Shown: positions 11,811-61,655 of the stretch, in pieces | Numbering within the stretch: position 1 is the stretch's first letter | How the letters are laid out: every line of letters begins with the position of its first letter | Origin: Hyphochytrium catenoides | Lineage: Eukaryota; Protista; Hyphochytriomycota | DNA length: 64,000 bases | Assembly (NCBI GenBank): GCA_900088475.1 | Contig: FLMG01000368.1 | Span: 62,001 to 126,000 of the forward strand | Reading direction: 5' to 3' | Program-made: the position numbers and the translations under genes | The notes under the pieces: generated by a model | What the model was told of the DNA's origin: nothing | The model's input: the letters and a program-made list of their open reading frames with translations, nothing else | Database searches by the model: none

Positions 11811-14800
11811 TCCTCTCTGGCTCTCGCTTCAGCTGTTCCACTCCTCTGTCTCTCCGCTTCTCTTTCTTCTCTCGCATTTTCCTTCGCCTTCTCCATGTCC
11901 TTGACTATCTGTGTCTCTGGTTCTCCTCTCCCTTGTCCGTAAGCGTATCCCGTTCTTACCTCACCAACTGCATCACCAATGGCCTGGCCCCTCTGTCAAG
12001 TTCTCTCTGTTTCTCTCTATCTTGGGATCGGCTGTCTCACTCCTTCTCACACTCTTTCTCTCTCTTCCTCTCTCTTTCTCCCTCTCTCCTTCTCCGCCAA
12101 CCTTGGTGACTTCAGCACCAGCACCACGCAGCAGAGAAGTCTTTGGAGGTCTCTCTCCTCAAAAGTGAGAGGAACACCTTGGGAGTCAAAGTGGAGGAGC
12201 TTATCAAGGCAAAGCTAACCTACGAAGCTCAACGAATCGAACTGAGCGAGAAATTTCGGGAGAAGGAGAGAGAGACAGAGGTGGAGAGAGAGAAAGTGAG
12301 GATGCTTGAGAGAGAGAATGACAGGCAATACCTTTACGTCCAAGACAGAGAGAAAGAACGGTCACTCAATGCTGACAGCAAGGCACAGGCCATTAGGCTG
12401 CTGGAGAAAGAAGTGAAGGAGAAGGAAAGAGTGCTGCAAGAAGAGAGAAAGAAAGGAGCAGAGCTTGAGGCAGAGAACAGCCTTCTCTCTTCAAAGTGCT
12501 CAGCCTTTGAAGAGACAGTGGCAAAGCTAACCTCCTCAATGGCGCAGTGCGTACCTGAGAGTAGGCTGACAGAAGAGCAGAAGAAAGTGGCGGAGAGAGA
12601 AGAACGCATACTCTCCTTGGAACTGCAGCATCGCCGTGGAGAAGGAGAGAGAGAGACTCAAAGACAGGAACTAACTCTACTCTCTCAGCAGCTGAGGGAG
12701 ACCCAGAGGATGAAAGAGGAAGAGGCCCTCCTGCTGCAGCGTAAACTGACAGAGATGACTCTCACGCTAGAGAGAGAGAGAGGTGAACACCATGACACGT
12801 TAAGACAGCAACAGAAGGAACATGAGCAGGAGCTCGACCGGGAGAGAGAAGAACAGGGACAAAAGTTCAGGAAGTTGAAGGAAGAGAGTGAAGAGAGAGA
12901 GAGACTTATGCGACAGAAGCAAGAAGATGGTCTCTGCCAAGAGAGAGACCGCTGCGATAGGAAGCAGCGAGAGCTTAGCGATGCGCTGGAGGAAATGCAT
13001 AGGGAGAGAAGGTGTCTGCAAGAGGAACTAGAGAAGGAGAAAGAGCGTCTACAAAAAGAGAGAGACAGCAGGGAAAGGGCAGAAAGAGAGCTAGCTTGCT
13101 CTTTACTCTCCTTACGACGGGCGAATGTCCTCAGTCGCATTTTTCAGAAGATGACCCAGCGTCTGGACGATGAGAGGATCAGAGGACTCGTCTTCCTTCG
13201 CTGGAAAGCCGAAACACGGATAGAGAGAGACCGGGGTCTGATCCAAGCGAGAGAAAGAGAGATGCATGAACTCTCTCATCTAGCCCTAGAGGACATCTCG
13301 GGCTCTCTTCTAAGAATCATTGAGAAACAGGAAAGAGAAGGCAAAGAAAGGACCCAAGCCGCCGTGCAGGGAAGTGCCTGTAACGAGGCAATCGAGGAGA
13401 AGAATCTTCTTTCTGTCTCCCATTCCAATCCCTGTTTAGAAGCAAGTGCTGGGCACCACTCGTCCACGGTCAATGCAGCACCAGCAGTGGGAGAGCGGGT
13501 GCAGGCCAAAGGCGGGAGAGAGGAGTCCCCGAAGACGTTGACAGGTGAAACCTGGACTGACTCTTGTTTACGTTTTATAGGCCTTCTCGGATGTAAAGCG
13601 CACTGCTTGCTGTCTTCTTCCGTTCTAGGCAGCTTTCCCTCCTTCTCTCCATGTCTTAGCGTCTCTTCCATCTCTCACAGCCTTTCTTCAAGCGGTGTTT
13701 CCTAAGAAAACGCACATGCACGCCGTTTCACCGCTGGTTTACCCTGTCATCTCCTTTCATTTTCTCTCTCTCTCTCTTTACTTCTAGAGGACCTGGGGAT
13801 ACTTGTTAGGAGGACAATAGATGAAGGCAGCGTGCATCAAAGGCAGCAGCTGTGGTCAGAGATGAGGGCCAGCGGTGTCGAGCAGAAAAGAGGAGAGGAA
13901 AAGGGACTTGTCTGGCTTTTCTCTCGAGCTCTCACTCTTGCTGCAGGGACCGGGGAGGGCAACGATGGAAATGGCGAATCGGCCTCTCTCTCACAACTCT
14001 CGCAGGTCCTAACTCTTATCCGCTTCTTCCTCTGCTGTCCTCTCATCTCCTTTTCTCTCCTCTGACCGCTTAAGCTGTCTCTCTCTCTCTCTCTCTCCTC
14101 ATTTTTATCCACTCTCCTTGTCCAATGTATCCCCGGTGTTCATGTCTAATATTGCCTTGTCTTGCCTCTTCAAGGCCATCGAGAGGAAGATTGCGCAGGA
14201 ATGTGCCCGTTTCGCTCAAGACCTCTTACTTCCTCTCTCTTGCGCAGGGGCAATGCCTCACATATCTCCCTCTACTTGCTCATACCCCGCCTGTGCTGAG
14301 GAGAAAAGGTTCGACTCTTTGATTAGGGGATTCTTCCTCACCCTCCGTCGACTTCTCCTCTTCTCTCTCTTCCTGAGATCCTCGTTTTCAATCCTAAACG
14401 TGATTGTCTCCCCGGTGTCTCAATCATCTCTCTCGCTCTCTGTCGCTCTCTCTGTCTCTGTTCCTCTGTCTCTCTCTCTGTTTCCTTGTGTTTCTCCCCC
14501 TCTCTCTCACTCCCTCTCGCTCTCTGTCTTCCTTCTCTCTTTCCGCGTCCTGGAACTCTAGGAGACTCGTATCATTATCAGCGCTGAGCCATCACTTTCA
14601 GAGCGTTATCGTAGAAGTGGCGAATAGTGGGATCTCTTCTCTTCTCCTTGCCTACCTCCAGGAGCTCGAGGTGAACTAAAGCGGCCGCCTTCGTCGCCTA
14701 TGTCTTTCTCTTTCTCTTTTTCTGCTAGAGAGTTCTCCTAAGGCTATGGTGCTCTGTCTCTGGATCCCACTCTCTTCTCCGTTCTCTGCGTCTCTTCCCA

Positions 14801-51694: not shown

Positions 51695-53512
51695 CTAACA
51701 GTCTCCCACATCAAAGTTAAAACTAAAGCCCTCCGTCCCCTTGTCGTCTCCGCTTTCTTCTTCCTTGATTGCCTCCCACATAGTCTTCCCACGTCCAATT
51801 GACTTTAGTGCTTCCTTCTCATACTCCTCAATTATTGAGCGGCATACAGGCCGTTTCTCCATCAGAGCAGTCTTGAGCTCTTTACACATCTCGGCCTTGA
51901 AGCGCTCATCGCAGAGGCCTGATATTTGAGGGACTCTTGTTTCCAGGAATTTCAGTACATGAGTAAGGTTGGCGGAGCTGACGTAGTTCTGGGTTATGGC
52001 CACAGAGTCTTCTAGGTTGATGACAGCATGCCACCAGCCCCTAGGCACAAAGATAAGCTCCCCCTCCTTGACCACACACTCCAGGGGCTTCACCGTGGTG
52101 TTTCTGGTATGATGATAGAAACCGAGGAACCATTCCACGAGTGAGACAGGGGTTGCAACGTCCGCGCCATCCTGGCTAGGATGCACGCCAGGAGGGACGA
52201 TGTCTGGAGGATACAGAATCCATTTCTTCGCTCCTTTGATAACAGCGTTCCAAGCAGATGTGGAGTTCGGGTCTTGGTGAAAGGAGCTCCCAGACTTCGC
52301 AGGGCCGATAATTATCCAACGGTAGTCTGGACGGTTGTCACCGAGAACTTGAAAAAAGTCTTCCTGTTAGTAATACGGTAGTAAGCATTGAGAACCACCT
52401 CCAGCTCAAGGACAGTATAGAATGTACCAGCAGTAAATAGATGCTGCAGAAGAAGAGAAGGGGGTCAACCAAAAGCTGTTCCTCTCATCTTGAAAGTCCC
52501 AAGTAAGAGTACGAGCGAAACCACTATCAATCAATGCTCTTTTCCTTACCTCAAAATAAATAGGGACGCTGTAGTCTTCTGCAAACTGAGGAACGCTTGA
52601 CGCGAACTTTTTGTCAAAAATATATAATGGCTGGTCATCCGCTGCACACTGCTCGGCATAGTGGAAGTAGTCTCTTAGAGTCATCCTGAAGCCGCCAGCA
52701 GAGAAGACGGCATCTCCAGCTTTCGATATGAGGTATTCTTTACTCCAGCGGCTAAACGCAGGCCAGCGACCCACGACGTCAGTAATAATTACAGGTTTAT
52801 TAGGCTCCTCATATTCCCGTCGAAAGTCCTCTAATGAGAGGTTCGATCGCCTGTCAACATTTTGTACATCTGCCACCCAGGAGGGATGCAGCGGAGCGGA
52901 CGCGCACCAGAAGGGTTGAAACAGGAGATCGGAGTAAAAGCCCTTCACCTCTATAGGTGAGTGCTTATAAAGAAAGCACTTTTTGCCACGGGCCCTATGA
53001 AGCATTGTGGCATACGTCCCTCTCCATGTCTTTTCAAAAGAAAACCTGCCATCATAGTCCATCAGCACTCGCGCTTTCCATTGTTCTTCGTGATGAACGA
53101 AGACGTAGAAGCTCTTGCTGACTGAAGCCAATATCCCAAGATCTCTGACCGAGAGCAGATCCAGAAGCTCTAACACTTGTGAGTCATTGAGTACTTGCAG
53201 AAGTCCCAGGCCCAGGTCTCTGATAGGCCTAACTCCCTTCTCATAGTCGGAAAACGAATTACCTTGAGGCTTGACACCATACGGATGACTTCCGCGGGTA
53301 AGCGTCCCTGACGCTTTGTCATCAATATCATCAACATTATCGTTCTCTTCTACGCCTTCCGACACATCTCCTGGCCCTTCTCTGTCCGTCGAGCTCTCGT
53401 AAGCTGATCCATCACTCCTCCTCCTCTTTCTTCTGTTACCTTCCTCATGTCCGGTAGTAGTACATTGAGTTGGGTTGGCGAAAGAGGCAGACAACGTTGC
53501 GATGACTGTCAT
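51695..53512 (-). CDS. F-box plus JmjC-domain protein (JMJD6-like), 2 exons (53512-52550, 52363-51695)
   Basis: F-box-like LQVLNDSQVLELLDLLSVRDLGILASVSKSFY. JmjC motifs PNKPVIITD, PLYIFD, GSSFHQDPNSTSAWN, GELIFVPRGWWHAVINLE, AITQNYV, with an intact HxD...H triad. Confidence 0.92.
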
Positions 53513-54066
53513 GGCTCCTGCTTTATCAAGGAAAGAAGAGCGTGTGACACTTGACAAGGCACGGGACGGCCGCCGCTCGCAGGCCAGGCCAGTAGGTCAA
53601 TGGCTAAGCCACTCCGAGGACGCTGACAAGCGCCGATGACAGAGAAAAGGAGACTGAGTTTTCATTATTGAGCGCCACCATCAAACCATCAACCACCCAA
53701 ATCCTCTACCTGTACCTTTCATTCTTTCCCTTTGTGAAAGCTTCAGGATCTGTACAGTAATAGAATGAAGAAACAAATTGTGGAAAGCAAGGCGAAGTTT
53801 AATCGTCATCTATTTTCGGTCAACTGGCGCATCGTCCAGGCCTTCCCCTGGAGTGGCTATGCTAGTCTCTCATCTCCCGTGTTTGAGATCTGTGATTCAG
53901 ATTTCTTCATATTATTGATGAACAGAGATTATGAAAATTCATCAGAGGATTGTAGGAGGGCAGCTTAGTAGGTGGACTTTGTCGCTTGTCCCTCCACTAA
54001 GCTCTCCTACTATCGACCAGCAGATCTACTTACGGCCGAGAAGAGCAAATAGCAAATTGCGGAATG

Positions 54067-54144: not shown

Positions 54145-57100
54145 ATGAAGTCCGAACCCTCTCGCTTTGGAGGAAAGCCCATCCCCGAAGTGTTAGCGCT
54201 GGCACAGAAGCAGAAGAAGGCATCACGTATAGAAGGAGACGGGAGTGCGAGGAAGAAGCGAAAGCTGGCCTGGGGTAAGAGCAGTTCCGGAAGCGATAGT
54301 GATAGCAATAGTGATGACGGTAGTAGCGATAGCAGTAGCAGTAGTGATAGCAGCAGTGGCTCGTCGAGCTCTGCAGCTTCGAGTTTATCCCCACCCAGAG
54401 CCCTTCAACCTCCTAGTCGGCATGTTGGCGCCACGAACCCACCAAAGCAACAACTAGGACTTCTGGCTAAAGTAGCAAAAGGTACCAGCAAAGCAGGTCC
54501 TCCTTCTTCAGGGTCATCTAGACTGGAACTTGCCAAGAAGTCCATCCTTGGCAAGAATGTTGGAGCCAAAAAGCCGCCGCAAACACCATCTAAGGCTTCA
54601 AACAAGCCCAGCAAGCTGAAAGGCGTGGACTCTAGTGGTTCTCCTAACGGCCGGGAAAACTCACCCTCCCCTATAAAGATTCGTGGAATTCCCCCCGCAC
54701 CACCCAGTATTGAGCCCCCAGGGTATAAGGAGATTCGTGGCCGTAGGGAACTAACCCTGGTGGCCAAGGAGCGTGCCGGAGATGCGCCAGAGGAATGCCC
54801 CGAAGCGAACATTCCCGACTATTTCACGGACACTTACGCAGCTGATACTGGAGACAAATTGCGTATTCTGGACGAGTTCTACTTCTGTGATGAGAAAGGG
54901 TGGGTTAACTTATCTCTTGCCTTTACAACCTGTCTTGTCTTGTAAGAGCTAACATTTGTACTCTAGTAAACCCTTGGGCCTAGACGTCCTTGATATCTCT
55001 CCGGAGCACCGTCCAGTGCTGATTGGTTTCGGGACAGTCGTGGAGCCTTTGCCACTGGATCTCAGGCCTAAAGTACCACCTCTCCAACCACCACCATTAC
55101 AGCCCGGGGGTGCTGGTGGCAAACCTGCTGACCGGTAAGTGTGATAATAGCTAGTTGGCGAACGGTAGCATGATGCTCTCCTACTTGTAGGAAACGACCA
55201 CGAACTAAGGGACGGCAGGAGAAGGTACACAAGGAAGGACGTGAAAATGGCCTTGAGTCAGCAAGTTCTGGTCACTCAGAGAGTGAAAGTGAGAGTGGAA
55301 GTGGATCTGAGAGCTCGTCCTCCAGTGATGGCTCCGCTACTAGTGACTCAGGCTCAGATACGGACACAGATGGCTCTCTGAGATCTGGCAGCGGAAGTGG
55401 TGACCACAGTGGGATTGAGGACGGCAGTGCTGCTGCGGCTGATAGTATGTCTAAAGAAAGTCCCAAAAGTAAGACGGTCAAAGTAGCGAGGACGGTTCCA
55501 CAGTACGATGGTCCGGCGTACGAATCAGCATCAATTGCTGACCACTGTTCGGGCCCCATCCCACAGTACGATGGTTCGTCAGAGGGACCCAAGACTTCAC
55601 CCCGACGTTCACGAGTTTGGCTCCCGAAGATTGATGAGTGGTGCATTGACTATACTTATGGGGACCCAACGCTCTGGGTAATCACTGAGAGCGCATGGTA
55701 TAAAATAGGGGGTCCTCTTTCAGGTGTGGGTCCTCACTGGTCCTATATATCACACTTCCATGGCACTCGGATGAAGTTTGAAGCTTGCATACAAGTAGCG
55801 GGAGTGCTGCAGGAGCTCCTACCTCTTAACCGCAAGCTCTCCTTCAAGGCAACAGTCGATGAGGTTGTACGCAGATCCTCGAAGTCTGGATATTTCGTAG
55901 TGGTAGGTATATTACTGCCCTCCCTTTGACCTGCCAATGAGTAGAATCGAGCTAAGTCAAGGACACTCTCTTTTCCTGCTTAGACACAAGACTTCCTCAT
56001 CCAGAATGCAAACTTTGTCATCGAACAGATGTCTTCCCTGGACGCTGGAGATCCTAAAAGGAAGTACGAAAATTGCCGATTTATCAAGAATCTGAGGCGG
56101 TTGGGCGAGCAGTACCAGCAGCGGGAGGAGCGGCAGCTTCAAGCGCAGTTAGAGCGTGATGCCAAGGAGACAGAACGGCTAAGAAAGAAAGAGGAGAAGA
56201 ACCGAGAAAAGGAAGAGCTCAGACAGAAAAAAGAGGCAGACCGTGCGGCTCGCGAAGCTGCTCGCCTTGCAGAGGAGCTTTCCAAACGGTACCCTATTGA
56301 TGATGATGACTTCTGGCGAGAGCAAACCGCCAAAGGCATTTCCCCAAGTAGCCCGCCCCCCTTCCGGACTCCTCCCCCACTTCCACGGCACCTGATGGGA
56401 GATTGCCTTATGTCCTGGGCGTCTATTAATTGTTATAGGGAGACGCTTCAGGTGTCGCCTTTCTCTATCGACGACCTGTGTGGGGCGCTCCTTTGTAATG
56501 ACCAGCAGCCGTGGCTTCTGACGGACATTTTTCAGGCAATCCTGTTGCAACTGCTGACGGAAGGTGACAGGGCTCAGCAAACAGTTGAAGATCCGGTGGA
56601 TGAAGAAGATATGGAACCAAAAGCGCGAACTGAGGTTATTCAGCGTGCGCCTCTTTTAAATGCACTCACCTGGCAAGAACTTCTGCGAGAGATTATTGCA
56701 GAGTATGTGAGAGTGGAAGCACCAATAGGCCTAAAAGATCCTCTGCTTTATTGTAAAGAGGTTTTGCAAAGGGTTTCAACTCATCCTTTGGCGAGCCCTT
56801 TTGTCAAACCAGTTGATCATGAAACTCTTGGGTTAGTAGATTATCCTGAGAAGATAAGGCATCCAATGGATCTAGGTACAGTGGCCTCTAAGATGGATTC
56901 GGGATGGTACGCTGTGCTGGAAGAACAATTGATCATCAACGATACCACAAGTGTAAAGGAAGCTTCAGATTCACCAAACGTTAAAAAGGAGCCGGGAGCG
57001 GTAGACGATAACAAGGGTCGAGAAATCGGGACCAGGAATTCTCGATCGTCAGTCCTGAACTACGCTAAGCTGGCAAGAGGTTCCACACCGGAGCAGAACA

Positions 57101-60005
57101 AGGAGTCTACAGAAGAGCTTTCTGGCCCCTCCAGAGTTGACCTTAAATACTTATATAGCGAACCGGAACTAGGTCAACAGCATGGTGGGACCAAGGCCTT
57201 TGCTGCAGATATGCGCTTGATCTTTACAAATTGTGTCCTCTATAACGGGCGTAACTCGCCACTGGGCAAAGCAGCAGCGCAACTGGCAGCAGTCTTTGAG
57301 CGAGAGTTCCAAACACGAGTGCTGAATCGAACAGCTGCGGATGAAGAGCTCTACAGCAAACAGCAATCCGCTCTGCGTCTCATGAAGAAGGAGAAAGGTG
57401 GCAGAGATTTACACGTCATTTATGCCGACTGGGCCTCGAGTCAGCCTCCATCGTTAAAGGATCTGGTGGTGCAGCTAGGTCTTGAAGACTTCACACAGGT
57501 TTGACCCATTTTGAAGCTTAGTGCTGCAGCATTCTGTGTTACTTGACCTAAGACTATACCTGCAGCTTCCCCTAGGGACAAAGGTGGCAGCATTATCTTG
57601 GGCATGCTCGGAGCTCAATGGCCTTTCGTTTATCAGGTACAGCTCACTTCGACTTTTTGGTCATCGCAGACGGTCTGACTTTCAATGTTGGTTCAAAGGG
57701 AGATGATTGATCACAATATGGAGAAGCTGGTTGCGATGAGCAAGCAAATCAGACAAGAAGAGAAGGATGACATTGCTAGCAGGAAACAGCGCGAGAAAGA
57801 AAGAAAGGAAGCTTCAGAAACGGCAGCAGATCCGGAACAAGCTGCTGCCGTGATTGAAGCTGAGGAAGAAGAGGAAGAAAAGGGCTATCGAGAACGCCAA
57901 AACGAGAGACAGAAAAAGCTCCAGGAGCTTATCAAAGAGGTGCAAATCAATCTGAAGATCTACCCTTTCTTGCTTTTCTGATGCAAATTCACACCTTTAT
58001 ACAGGCCGACATTCGCCTCAAGCCTATGGGAACTGACCGCTATCACAACCGGTATTGGAGGTTCGACAATGACGCTACAGGATCTATATGGGTGGAATGT
58101 GGGACCAATGGGGATTGCCAAGCTTATCGTACTGGCAAGGAGTTAGATCAGCTCATAGCCTGGCTAGAAGAGAAAGGGGTCAGAGAAAAGAGTTTCAAAG
58201 ACCTGCTGATGACCGAAAAGGGAGCCCTACTTGCCAAGATGCAGGAACTTCCCAGCAATGGTCTAGAGGAGAGTGCAGACAAGATAGACCACAGGAGCCA
58301 GTCCTTTGGCCAGACTTTGTATTCACAGGAAAAACAGATTGAAGCAGCTGCTGTGTGGAGAGGCTCCACAGAGGGCAAAAAGTGGCAACATTACCTCAAC
58401 GATATTGATGGTGGCAAGGGATATAGCGAGCTGTCTCCATCGCTAGGGGAGTTCTTCCATCCCATCACCGTGAAGGTTATGAAGAAGGGACTGGTCAGCA
58501 CCCACGAAGCTCTACGTAGCCTGCTTCTGGGGTTAGAGGAGCGCTACAATAATCCGCAGATTCTTGGCGAGTTCTGGGAGGATGAACGTAAGGACTGGGT
58601 GGAAAGACTGCAAGCTCCTCATGCTTCTGACCCCTCTGAAGCTGCGAAAGATGAGCTCTCCGTCTTTGTCAAATCTCTTTTGGAGCTGGAACAGCGCCTC
58701 TATGACTCTCATCATCTCTTCAATAGCTCTTGGGCGACAGCAAGACGCTCTTGGCGGAGATCAGTGTATGCAGCCTCGACACACTCCCAGATAGCTCTTT
58801 TAATTAGCAGAATGCAGGTCTTCGGAGTAGATCGAAATGCCCTGGGAGACCTGTGCGCAGTGCTGGACAGGAAGCAGTTTATGCGGCTGGTGAATAAAGC
58901 AAGTAGGTCCTTCATACCCGAGCTCAATGAGGAGGTTGTATACTTTGGAGACGGGCACAGTGACGCCATCAAGCAAGACTCTACCTATAGTACCAATTGG
59001 AGCGCCACAGGCCCTTCGATAGGAACTACACTACCTTGCAGAGTCATTGCCATCACCTACCACGCAGGAAAGGGCGATCCCTACGTCAGGGTGTTGCTGA
59101 AGCCGTCCAAAGCAACGTTGGAGGTCGTTCCACCGTCTTTAGGAGATAGTATATGTGTGATGCCAACAGCGAGGTCGAGGATGAACAGGCTTTTCATATA
59201 TATCATCTATGCACTCCGCTCTTTGGACTGCGCAGGTCCTTTCCTGGAGCCGGTGTCCACAACCTACTTCCCAGACTATCTGAGCATCGTAAAGCACCCA
59301 ATGGACTTGCAAACCATGGAGTCAAAAGCCTTCAGAGAGGCCTATGGCAACGAGGAAGAGTTCAGAAGCGACATTGATCTCATAGCAAGTAACTGTGCAG
59401 CCTATTGCTCGGAGAAGTATCCAACCCTACCTCCACTAGCCCGGAAGCTTCGAGATCATGCTTTTGAAGCTCTAACGAATTCCAAAGATGATTTGGCAGC
59501 AATTAGAACAGAGTTTCTTCAGGAGGCTCCTGAAGCACCTACCAAGGACCAACCGTCACCGGAGGATACTGCCAACAAGGCAGGCCATAAAAGAGCAGTA
59601 GAGAATATCGAGGCAGCTTTACGGCTTGAGAATCGGCTTCCAGAGTTTATTATCCCGATCGCACGATATGTTGAGCACATCCAGAGAGTGTGGACTGTCG
59701 GTGACCGCATCAAGATGCAGTTTAGAAATAACCAGGGTCAAAAGGTCACTTACGGAGGAAAGGTGAAGGGAGCGAAGCCCTTTCTCGCTTCAAAGTTATT
59801 ACCTTGGGAAGCCCTGGAAATAGAGTGGGACTCTGGGGGAGGTGGCAACAGATATGTAAACCCTTGGTAAGTCATCGGTCTGTCCTTTCCACTCTCAAGA
59901 TGCCCAGCACTAAAGCATGCCTACTGCAGGGAAGTCAGTCCAGATGAGCCTAAAGTGGACCTGAGAGGTGGAGCCTCCAAGAAGAAGGCCAAACGGAGGG
60001 GTTAG
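54145..60005 (+). CDS. Multidomain chromatin protein: RFTS (DNMT1-RFD)-like, DDT, bromodomain, WHIM1-3, BRWD/PHIP-type Tudor module with second bromodomain, about 8 exons
   Basis: RFTS-like IDEWCIDY...LWVITESAWYKI. DDT GDCLMSWASINCYRETLQVSPFSIDDLCGAL. Bromodomains PFVKPVD...DYPEKIRHPMDLGTV...DMRLIFTNCVLYN and PFLEPV...DYLSIVKHPMDLQTM. WHIM2/3 PMGTDRYHNRYW...LEEKGVREKS. C-terminal VNPWEV. Confidence 0.85.
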
Positions 60006-60440: not shown

Positions 60441-61655
60441 CTAGAAGTCGATGGAAACAGAATCTGAGAAACCTCGAGGCACAAAAGCTATAGGATCGTC
60501 CACAGGGTCAAAGAGGAACATGTCCAGATCATTGAACAGAGCAGAGGCATTCGCGTACATGTCCTGCGCCAAATCTCCAGCCTGAGGAGAAGCCGGTTCA
60601 CTAGATGAATAGTCGTCCAGAGAGCGCAGCCAGAGCTGATCTACGAGGTTGACAGCTGTAGAGAACAGTGGATCCACCGCCGCCGCGACAGCTTCCTGCG
60701 CGAGAAGGGAAGCGACCATGGGTTCTGAATCCTTGTCCTCAGCCAGGGAAAGTGTACTAAAGGCACCGGAAGGTGAGCCTACTGGGGACAAAGTAGGTGC
60801 AGAGTGGTTCCCAGGGTTGGTGGGTGTGCTAGATGCTGGCGACTTGCTGCTGAAGGCGCCTCTCTGTGACTCCTCTTTGACGGTAAGGGATGTGGAGGGT
60901 ATGTCTAGCAGATGAGGTCTTTTGTTTCGCCTTAGTTTCTTTGCTGGGGGAAGGTCATAACCCACGACTGACTGCCCAATCTTCATCGCAAACTTGACAA
61001 ACTGTGTAGACCAAAAGTTCGTTGCGGCCTGAAGAAGAGCTTTAAGCTCGTCCTTGTCGTCATCTGCGGGCTTCATTTCCGTCTTCTTTGCCAGTATTAT
61101 TTGCTGGTAGAAGTTCGTCTCAAGCTTAGAAAGGGTCTTCATTCTCTCTCGATGTTGATCCTCTGGAAACTCTATGGACTTTGACTTCGGAATATTGTAT
61201 GTGTGTTTCCCTAGCGCCTTGCGCTGAAATTTCTTGGATAGTCTCATGGGGCTGCAGTTGAGTAGTCTTGCCAGTACCAGGCGAACGGGAGTGCCTTGTC
61301 CTACGGGAAGACATCCTGCTAGGAACTCCTTGATGATGCACTGAACATAGAGCTCCTCCTCTGCCGTCCATTTGCCATTGCGAAGAGGGGGTTGATCATT
61401 AGAAATGGGATAAACCAGCGCCACCTTATTAATCTCCACTTGACACGTAGGACAAGCCTTCAGCGGGTACTGGTTGATACATCGTGAGTGAAACATGTGT
61501 CCACATTTTGGCAGTGAGATGATAGCCAGAGCTCCGGCGCAGGCACTGCAGATATTCTCCTTTATGGCAGCTTCTCCGCTCTGGATGCAGCTCTTATTTA
61601 AAGCACCAGCGCCCGCAGGTCCAGTCCCCGCCATATCTGCGCATGAACGCTTCAT
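60441..61655 (-). CDS. RING-H2-like zinc finger plus conserved 'RxGKWTxEEE...CxPMRLSKKF' (Myb-like) domain protein, single exon
   Basis: 404-aa ORF. CSAC...CGHMFHSRC...CPTC, then LRNGKWTAEEELYVQCIIKEFLAGCLP...LLNCSPMRLSKKF. Acidic C-terminus. Confidence 0.85.
   Translation of the reverse strand: MKRSCADMAGTGPAGAGALNKSCIQSGEAAIKENICSACAGALAIISLPKCGHMFHSRCINQYPLKACPTCQVEINKVALVYPISNDQPPLRNGKWTAEEELYVQCIIKEFLAGCLPVGQGTPVRLVLARLLNCSPMRLSKKFQRKALGKHTYNIPKSKSIEFPEDQHRERMKTLSKLETNFYQQIILAKKTEMKPADDDKDELKALLQAATNFWSTQFVKFAMKIGQSVVGYDLPPAKKLRRNKRPHLLDIPSTSLTVKEESQRGAFSSKSPASSTPTNPGNHSAPTLSPVGSPSGAFSTLSLAEDKDSEPMVASLLAQEAVAAAVDPLFSTAVNLVDQLWLRSLDDYSSSEPASPQAGDLAQDMYANASALFNDLDMFLFDPVDDPIAFVPRGFSDSVSIDF

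Follow-up and report, generated by a model that had tools for sequence, protein, structure and literature searches.

A predicted Hyphochytrium catenoides chromatin protein that joins a DNMT1-type RFTS domain to DDT/WHIM, bromodomain and Tudor-like modules

We analysed a 64,000-nucleotide stretch of the Hyphochytrium catenoides genome (contig FLMG01000368.1, positions 62,001 to 126,000 of the forward strand; this whole stretch is called the window, and its numbering is used throughout) and describe here a gene on its plus strand, at 54145-60005. Reading of its open frames and splice sites gives a single gene of 8 exons and 7 introns that encodes ~1,797 residues and is complete within the window. 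Its splice junctions are predictions, based on the sequence and on colinearity with orthologous proteins. All 7 introns are 56-87 nt long with GT-AG ends and consistent phases, and each of them, if left in, meets an in-frame stop within a few codons, so that the reading frame is kept only with the introns removed. The donor of intron 3 has two options, 55897 or 55903, both in frame. The predicted domain order is a disordered N-terminus (probably, for the Ser/Lys-rich region of exon 1), the replication-foci domain of DNMT1 (RFTS, DNMT1-RFD in Pfam), DDT, bromodomain 1, a WHIM1-like segment, WSD/WHIM2, bromodomain 2 and a Tudor-like barrel of the ARF_AD type, with a Glu/Lys-rich linker in exon 6 that is probably a coiled coil. 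An earlier note on this DNA had described much of this architecture, and the motifs it quoted are present at the positions where it placed them.

Pfam scans were run exon by exon. With the DNMT1-RFD profile (PF12047, cut-off 22 bits) exon 3 scored 29.3 bits (E 1e-6) over profile positions 63-143 of 144, and a six-frame genome search scored the same locus at 30.1 bits. This exon-3 piece also matched both RFDs of Arabidopsis MET1 when PDB sequences were searched directly with it (E 0.004). The N-terminal half of the domain lies further upstream, where intron 1 (67 nt) cuts it after ...FYFCDEKG and exon 2 continues it; Pfam misses this half because the intron splits it and a Ser-rich insert lies between it and the remainder of the domain. 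When the corresponding half of an orthologue was scanned alone, this short piece gave 12.4 bits (E 0.16) at the expected profile positions 3-30. The tail of exon 1 is 49% identical to Aphanomyces protein P0005 over 57 residues and is aligned with all of the orthologues in alignment A1, exon 2 aligns to orthologues P0002, P0005, P0006 and P0014 (E 1e-6 to 5e-9), and the head of exon 4 aligns to the helical lobe of the orthologues. The four RFTS pieces of the window fall, colinearly, in conserved blocks of the orthologue alignment, with a variable low-complexity insert at the same point. Identity to the orthologues is 54-62% over ~91-96 residues for the exon-3 block in pairwise comparison; in the alignment of the RFTS region it is 48% there and 29-33% in the remaining pieces.

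The fold was examined with an AlphaFold model of an orthologue that has a short insert (P0014, residues 63-470, from alignment A1), and so it describes the family and not the window's own chain. The model has a mean pLDDT of 71, with ordered parts at 70-98. When it was compared with the PDB by Foldseek, the best 18 matches were all RFTS domains of DNMT1, MET1 or DIM-2 (best E 2e-5, probability 1.00), and the entries at the top of this fold search, 5WVO and 6PZV, illustrate the binding of ubiquitylated H3 and H3K9me3 by the RFTS in DNMT1. VIA-align superposed residues 24-349 of the model on residues 371-589 of human DNMT1 with Z 11.6 and an rmsd of 5-6 Å over 193-209 aligned residues; this match takes in the two halves of the barrel as well as the helical lobe, and the first unrelated structure follows at Z 5.7. 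Other searches added little: P0014 residues 100-470 found no match among PDB sequences, the matches of the A1 profile of the RFTS region to the same sequences were all of low complexity, owing to the Ser-rich insert, and so uninformative, and ESM Atlas searches by features and by fold gave nothing usable (TM <0.25, bacterial clusters). Overall the RFTS identity is well supported for the family, as judged from the model, and for the window protein it holds by alignment. The window protein is predicted to carry a full RFTS that comprises the helical lobe and the barrel, the latter interrupted by a long loop of low complexity, and the earlier claim of a DNMT1 RFTS-like domain whose two halves are split by a Ser-rich insert is supported by the Pfam match to the C-terminal half, the orthologue-aligned N-terminal half and the fold of the orthologue model.

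Although the two-lobe fold is that of the DNMT1/MET1/DIM-2 RFTS (~200 aligned residues in the orthologue model), the window protein differs from these proteins in having a ~190-residue loop in the barrel, ~17% sequence identity, and neither a BAH nor a C5-methyltransferase domain. Membership of the DNMT1/MET1/DIM-2 group was therefore rejected, since neither of the two domains was found. Indeed, Pfam gave no match in any exon to a methyltransferase, BAH, WAC, PHD, WD40 or zinc finger domain (WAC and PHD at E values up to 1), and BAH was not matched in the orthologues either. The earlier note had likewise seen no C5-methyltransferase in the gene, and the six-frame search described below extends that absence to the genome assembly.

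The scores of DDT, WSD and the two bromodomains lie well over their Pfam cut-offs. DDT, which the earlier note had put at ~56390-56560, gave 52.9 bits (E 3.9e-14) in exon 4, WSD/WHIM2 gave 68 bits in exon 7, and the two predicted bromodomains gave 57.4 bits (in two stretches, exon 4) and 60.5 bits (exon 7). Bromodomain 1 retains the ...YN motif and, with this canonical Asn, probably reads acetyl-lysine. It carries 92 hydrophilic residues (56911-57186) in the loop between helices A and B that are found in none of the oomycete orthologues, and this insert could be an in-frame intron (GT at 56914 or 56953, AG at 57180). In bromodomain 2, for which an AlphaFold2 model of the C-terminal region matches TAF1 BD2 with Z 18.7, a Cys replaces the Asn that anchors acetyl-lysine. 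This Cys lies in the motif NCxx[YF]C within 59220-59417, its position being read from the motif, and is invariant in 14 sequences (the window protein and 13 orthologues), so bromodomain 2 is probably an atypical reader. At the C-terminus ARF_AD scored 31 bits on exon 7 and 35 bits when the last 88 residues were scanned alone (cut-off 27). BRWD_AD matched the orthologues only, at 13-21 bits versus a cut-off of 40, and gave nothing on the window. The module that the earlier note had called a BRWD/PHIP Tudor module is thus better described as an ARF_AD-type Tudor-like barrel; this assignment rests on the Pfam profile, the structure search with the C-terminal model having been filled by bromodomains. 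BRWD1, BRWD3 and PHIP do resemble the window protein in having two bromodomains, one of them atypical, and an 'ancillary' Tudor-like barrel of a related kind. However, the window protein has no WD40 domain, its bromodomains lie ~700 residues apart and not in tandem, and its barrel comes after, not before, a bromodomain. Membership of this group was rejected on the missing WD40, the lack of tandem bromodomains and a BRWD_AD score far under the cut-off.

Table 1. Predicted features of the gene and its two neighbours, in window coordinates
Feature	Position	Strand	Content
Exon 1	54145..54899	+	ATG, Ser/Lys-rich N-terminus, first strand of RFTS N-lobe (54859-54899, motif LRILDEFYFCDEKG)
Intron 1	54900-54966	+	GT..AG, 67 nt, phase 2; junction codon gg-t (Gly)
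Exon 2	54967..55134	+	Remainder of RFTS N-terminal half (to ~55055), then Pro-rich start of insert
Intron 2	55135-55190	+	GTAAGT..AG, 56 nt
Exon 3	55191..55896	+	Ser/Asp/Gly-rich low-complexity insert (to ~55605), RFTS C-terminal barrel half (Pfam 55612-55872)
Exon 4	55984..57498	+	RFTS helical lobe (to ~56130), charged coiled region, DDT 56389-56559, bromodomain 1 56752-~57350
Intron 4	57499-57565	+	GT..AG, consistent phase
Exon 5	57566..57636	+	WHIM1-like segment
Intron 5	57637-57698	+	GT..AG, consistent phase
Exon 6	57699..57939	+	Glu/Lys-rich linker; splice reading, weak orthologue matches
Exon 7	58005..59866	+	WSD/WHIM2 58011-58214, conserved middle region, bromodomain 2 ~59169-59525, Tudor-like ARF_AD-type barrel 59646-59866
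Intron 7	59867-59929	+	GTAAGT..AG, 63 nt, phase 2
Exon 8	59930..60005	+	Last Tudor-like strand (W-EVSPDE across the junction), basic tail, TAG stop 60003-60005
Upstream neighbour	51695-53557	-	Divergent; ORF translation suggests an F-box plus JmjC/cupin protein
Downstream neighbour	60441-61655	-	Convergent; 404-residue ORF with a RING-like Cys/His cluster near the N-terminus

The same architecture is conserved in oomycetes. When the open frame of exon 7 (57864-59867) was compared with 1.8 billion representative proteins, the best matches, at 34-38% identity, were oomycete proteins from Phytophthora infestans, Lagenidium, Pythium, Aphanomyces and Thraustotheca; exon 7 itself is 31-36% identical to the oomycete proteins over ~620 residues, and the start of exon 8 corresponds to their INPWE.E ending. 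Hyphochytrids are the sister lineage of oomycetes, which would explain an identity of ~35%. A search seeded on the Aphanomyces RFD region returned ~30 full-length orthologues in Peronosporales, Pythiales and Saprolegniales. The Pfam set common to the P. infestans, Aphanomyces, Thraustotheca and environmental orthologues consists of the C-terminal half of RFD, DDT, bromodomain, WSD, bromodomain and ARF_AD, although DDT is sub-threshold (20-22 bits) in some of them. Orthologues such as P. infestans KAF4135764.1, Aphanomyces stellatus KAF0683469.1 and a Plasmopara record have the same domain order as the window protein, from the split RFD through the ARF_AD-type barrel, and share with it the position of the low-complexity insert in RFD and the Cys of bromodomain 2. 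The window gene differs from them in its seven short introns, in the insert in bromodomain 1 and in its origin from a hyphochytrid lineage, apart from the oomycetes sampled. Two of the database orthologues look like merged gene models, namely Lagenidium giganteum P0001 (3,275 aa), which runs ~1,900 residues beyond the usual C-terminus, and Pythium insidiosum P0204 (2,182 aa), in which a stretch resembling the RFD N-terminal half is joined to Tuberin/Rap-GAP.

The orthologues also bear on whether there is one protein at all. Were the gene model an artefact, the RFD exons would belong to a separate upstream gene and no single chimeric protein would exist, and the exon joins are indeed predicted from sequence and not from transcripts. 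Against this, all 8 window exons align in order to single, uninterrupted oomycete proteins, and the 1,891-aa P. infestans protein KAF4135764.1 is carried on a 6.2-kb contig, and must therefore be encoded by essentially one open frame with almost no room for introns. Together these rule out the placing of RFD in a separate gene. The helical lobe of the RFTS itself spans the junction of exons 3 and 4, no in-frame stop and start are so placed that a first gene could end and a second begin, and both flanking genes are on the opposite strand, with ends at ~53557 and ~60441. We consequently give the artefact next to no credence.

Outside the oomycetes the brown alga Discosporangium mesarthrocarpum has a protein, P0015, with WSD, bromodomain and ARF_AD/BRWD_AD matches, in which a Pfam scan detected no RFD or DDT. 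Either this model is truncated or RFD was added in the oomycete-hyphochytrid lineage only. Since distant relatives such as this one lack a detectable RFD, the addition of RFD appears, from the sequences compared, to be a feature of the Pseudofungi.

With regard to function, DDT together with WHIM forms the ISWI-docking module of ACF1, WSTF and the BAZ proteins. In ACF1/BAZ1A, WSTF/BAZ1B, yeast Itc1 and the plant DDT proteins, as in the window protein, DDT and WSD/WHIM2 are followed by a C-terminal bromodomain. In contrast to the ACF1/WSTF/Itc1 group the window protein has no WAC and no PHD and adds the RFTS, a second bromodomain and the Tudor-like barrel. Six-frame family searches of the 61-Mb assembly (4,759 contigs) found the ISWI SLIDE domain at two loci and one further DDT locus. 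Given a DDT plus WHIM module and a genome that encodes ISWI, the most likely role of the protein is that of an ISWI accessory subunit. By analogy with ACF1, WSTF and BAZ, the DDT/WHIM module would dock the ISWI ATPase, and the remaining modules would choose the nucleosomes to be spaced. The protein could instead serve as a multivalent scaffold on chromatin, without binding ISWI, and retain DDT and WSD as structural remnants, as might be argued from the absent WAC and PHD, the marginal WHIM1, the undetected WHIM3 and the sub-threshold DDT of some orthologues. The window's own DDT and WSD scores are strong, the genome encodes ISWI, and to our knowledge every DDT plus WHIM protein so far characterised is an ISWI partner, so that we think such a scaffold very improbable.

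As for the RFTS, by analogy with DNMT1 it would most likely recognise the H3 tail when ubiquitylated and/or methylated at K9, or another ubiquitylated mark coupled to replication. Through this recognition ISWI would be recruited to chromatin that is replicating or heterochromatic, and DNA methylation would not be needed. A targeting reader on an ISWI accessory subunit, as the earlier note had proposed, remains by analogy the best explanation of the domain set. A complex prediction between an orthologue RFTS and this genome's ubiquitin scored 0.00 and counts neither way. Alternatively, the RFTS could act mainly within the molecule, as an autoinhibitory plug that gates the DDT/WHIM-ISWI module until a chromatin signal arrives. 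The DNMT1 RFTS is established to behave in this way, sitting in the catalytic cleft, as in the autoinhibited structures 4WXX and 3AV4, and the RFTS is directly upstream of DDT in every orthologue, but what it plugs in DNMT1 is a surface of the methyltransferase domain, which this protein lacks, and we consider a plug quite unlikely.

Targeting by the RFTS has to be set against what the genome holds of the methylation machinery. On whether the genome encodes DNMT1 or UHRF1, a point raised by the earlier note, the six-frame searches of the whole assembly matched neither the C5-methyltransferase family (PF00145) nor the SRA domain of the UHRF1 type. One Pre-SET candidate was found, with a score barely over the cut-off. 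According to a review, neither 5-methylcytosine (5mC) nor a 5mC methyltransferase gene has been found in oomycetes (PMC11261156), and in a survey of SAR microeukaryotes DNMT1 is generally lacking (PMC9998398). A precedent for an RFTS in such a setting is Schizosaccharomyces pombe Raf2, a subunit of CLRC that acts in chromatin, has no DNA methyltransferase in the protein or in the organism, and binds Cul4 through its RFTS (PMC4121317). Raf2 is otherwise a different protein, of small size, with a C2H2 zinc finger but no DDT, WHIM or bromodomains, whereas the window protein is far larger. Membership of a Raf2 type was rejected, since the window protein has no zinc finger and another architecture and shares only the property of an RFTS without a methyltransferase.

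Raf2 nevertheless suggests another role for the RFTS, as an adaptor to a cullin-type E3 ligase that would link the ISWI remodeller to a ubiquitin ligase. This would fit the binding of the Raf2 RFTS to Cul4, which needs no methyltransferase (PMC4121317), as well as the failure to find a UHRF1-type SRA protein in the genome. It would also fit a second RFD gene of H. catenoides (L001:1099-2160, minus strand; G000:C903 ~12731-13792), a 353-residue ORF in which DNMT1-RFD (38.5 bits) is the sole Pfam domain and the final stretch is rich in Cys; this gene may encode a small Raf2-like RFTS protein, and it suggests RFD functions unrelated to DNA methylation. The closest structures to the family model, however, are the RFTS domains of DNMT1 and MET1 (Z 11.6) and not a ligase adaptor, in a comparison set without a Raf2 structure. 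We regard a cullin adaptor as unlikely, though it deserves to be taken seriously.

Several observations weigh against an ISWI accessory subunit guided by the RFTS, and in part against the gene model beneath it. The earlier note had listed WHIM1-3, of which WSD/WHIM2 stands; WHIM1 is near-threshold only, at 17.2 versus 19.1 bits in the P. infestans orthologue, where exon 5 aligns (P0002 1166-1188, 57% identity), and WHIM3 was not detected in the Pfam scans. With WAC and a PHD finger absent from all exons, the protein departs from the orthodox BAZ type. For UHRF1, the writer of the H3 ubiquitin mark that the DNMT1 RFTS reads, the SRA search of the genome detected no counterpart, and a methyltransferase missing from an assembly as fragmented as this one is not proof of absence. 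Finally, the N-terminal half of the window's RFTS, which spans an intron, was identified through the orthologue alignment, and the exon junctions are predictions from sequence reading and orthologue colinearity. Taking all of this together, we favour, with some reserve, the reading of the locus as one gene for a nuclear chromatin protein that serves ISWI as an accessory subunit, with an orphan RFTS to guide it.

Every domain of this protein is known, and its architecture already occurs in public records from oomycetes, most of them filed as "bromodomain" or "hypothetical", and so is not unique to this genome. The earlier note had found the combination unfamiliar; no paper describing the architecture was found in the literature searched (the WHIM-motif literature, a possible place for such a listing, was not covered), nor was any experimental study of the oomycete orthologues. 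It is, however, no one-off chimera, being conserved across the oomycetes, and the Plasmopara record had been named automatically as 'putative bromodomain, DDT domain, DNMT1 replication foci'. The Raf2 paper called RFTS proteins without a methyltransferase fungus-specific (PMC4121317), a statement that this family of RFTS-bearing putative ISWI partners contradicts. The family suggests that the RFTS can work without DNA methylation.

A wider, and doubtful, possibility is that the Pseudofungi (oomycetes and hyphochytrids) lack cytosine methylation and have kept the RFTS as a free-standing reader of a ubiquitin or H3 mark linked to replication or heterochromatin and have wired it to an ISWI remodeller, so that epigenetic inheritance after replication would proceed through nucleosome spacing and not through DNA methylation. 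The RFTS is known almost solely from DNMT1, where it couples maintenance methylation to the H3 ubiquitylation written by UHRF1, with Raf2 as the one studied exception. If the possibility were true, the link between the RFTS and ubiquitylated H3 would be older than DNMT1 and separable from it. A conserved family that combines a full RFTS with an ISWI-docking module, in organisms without 5mC, is a natural experiment on what the RFTS does alone, and a candidate route by which nucleosome remodelling may be targeted to replicating or silent chromatin. Since orthologues are present in transformable crop pathogens of the genera Phytophthora, Plasmopara, Pythium and Aphanomyces, the question is amenable to ordinary experiments.

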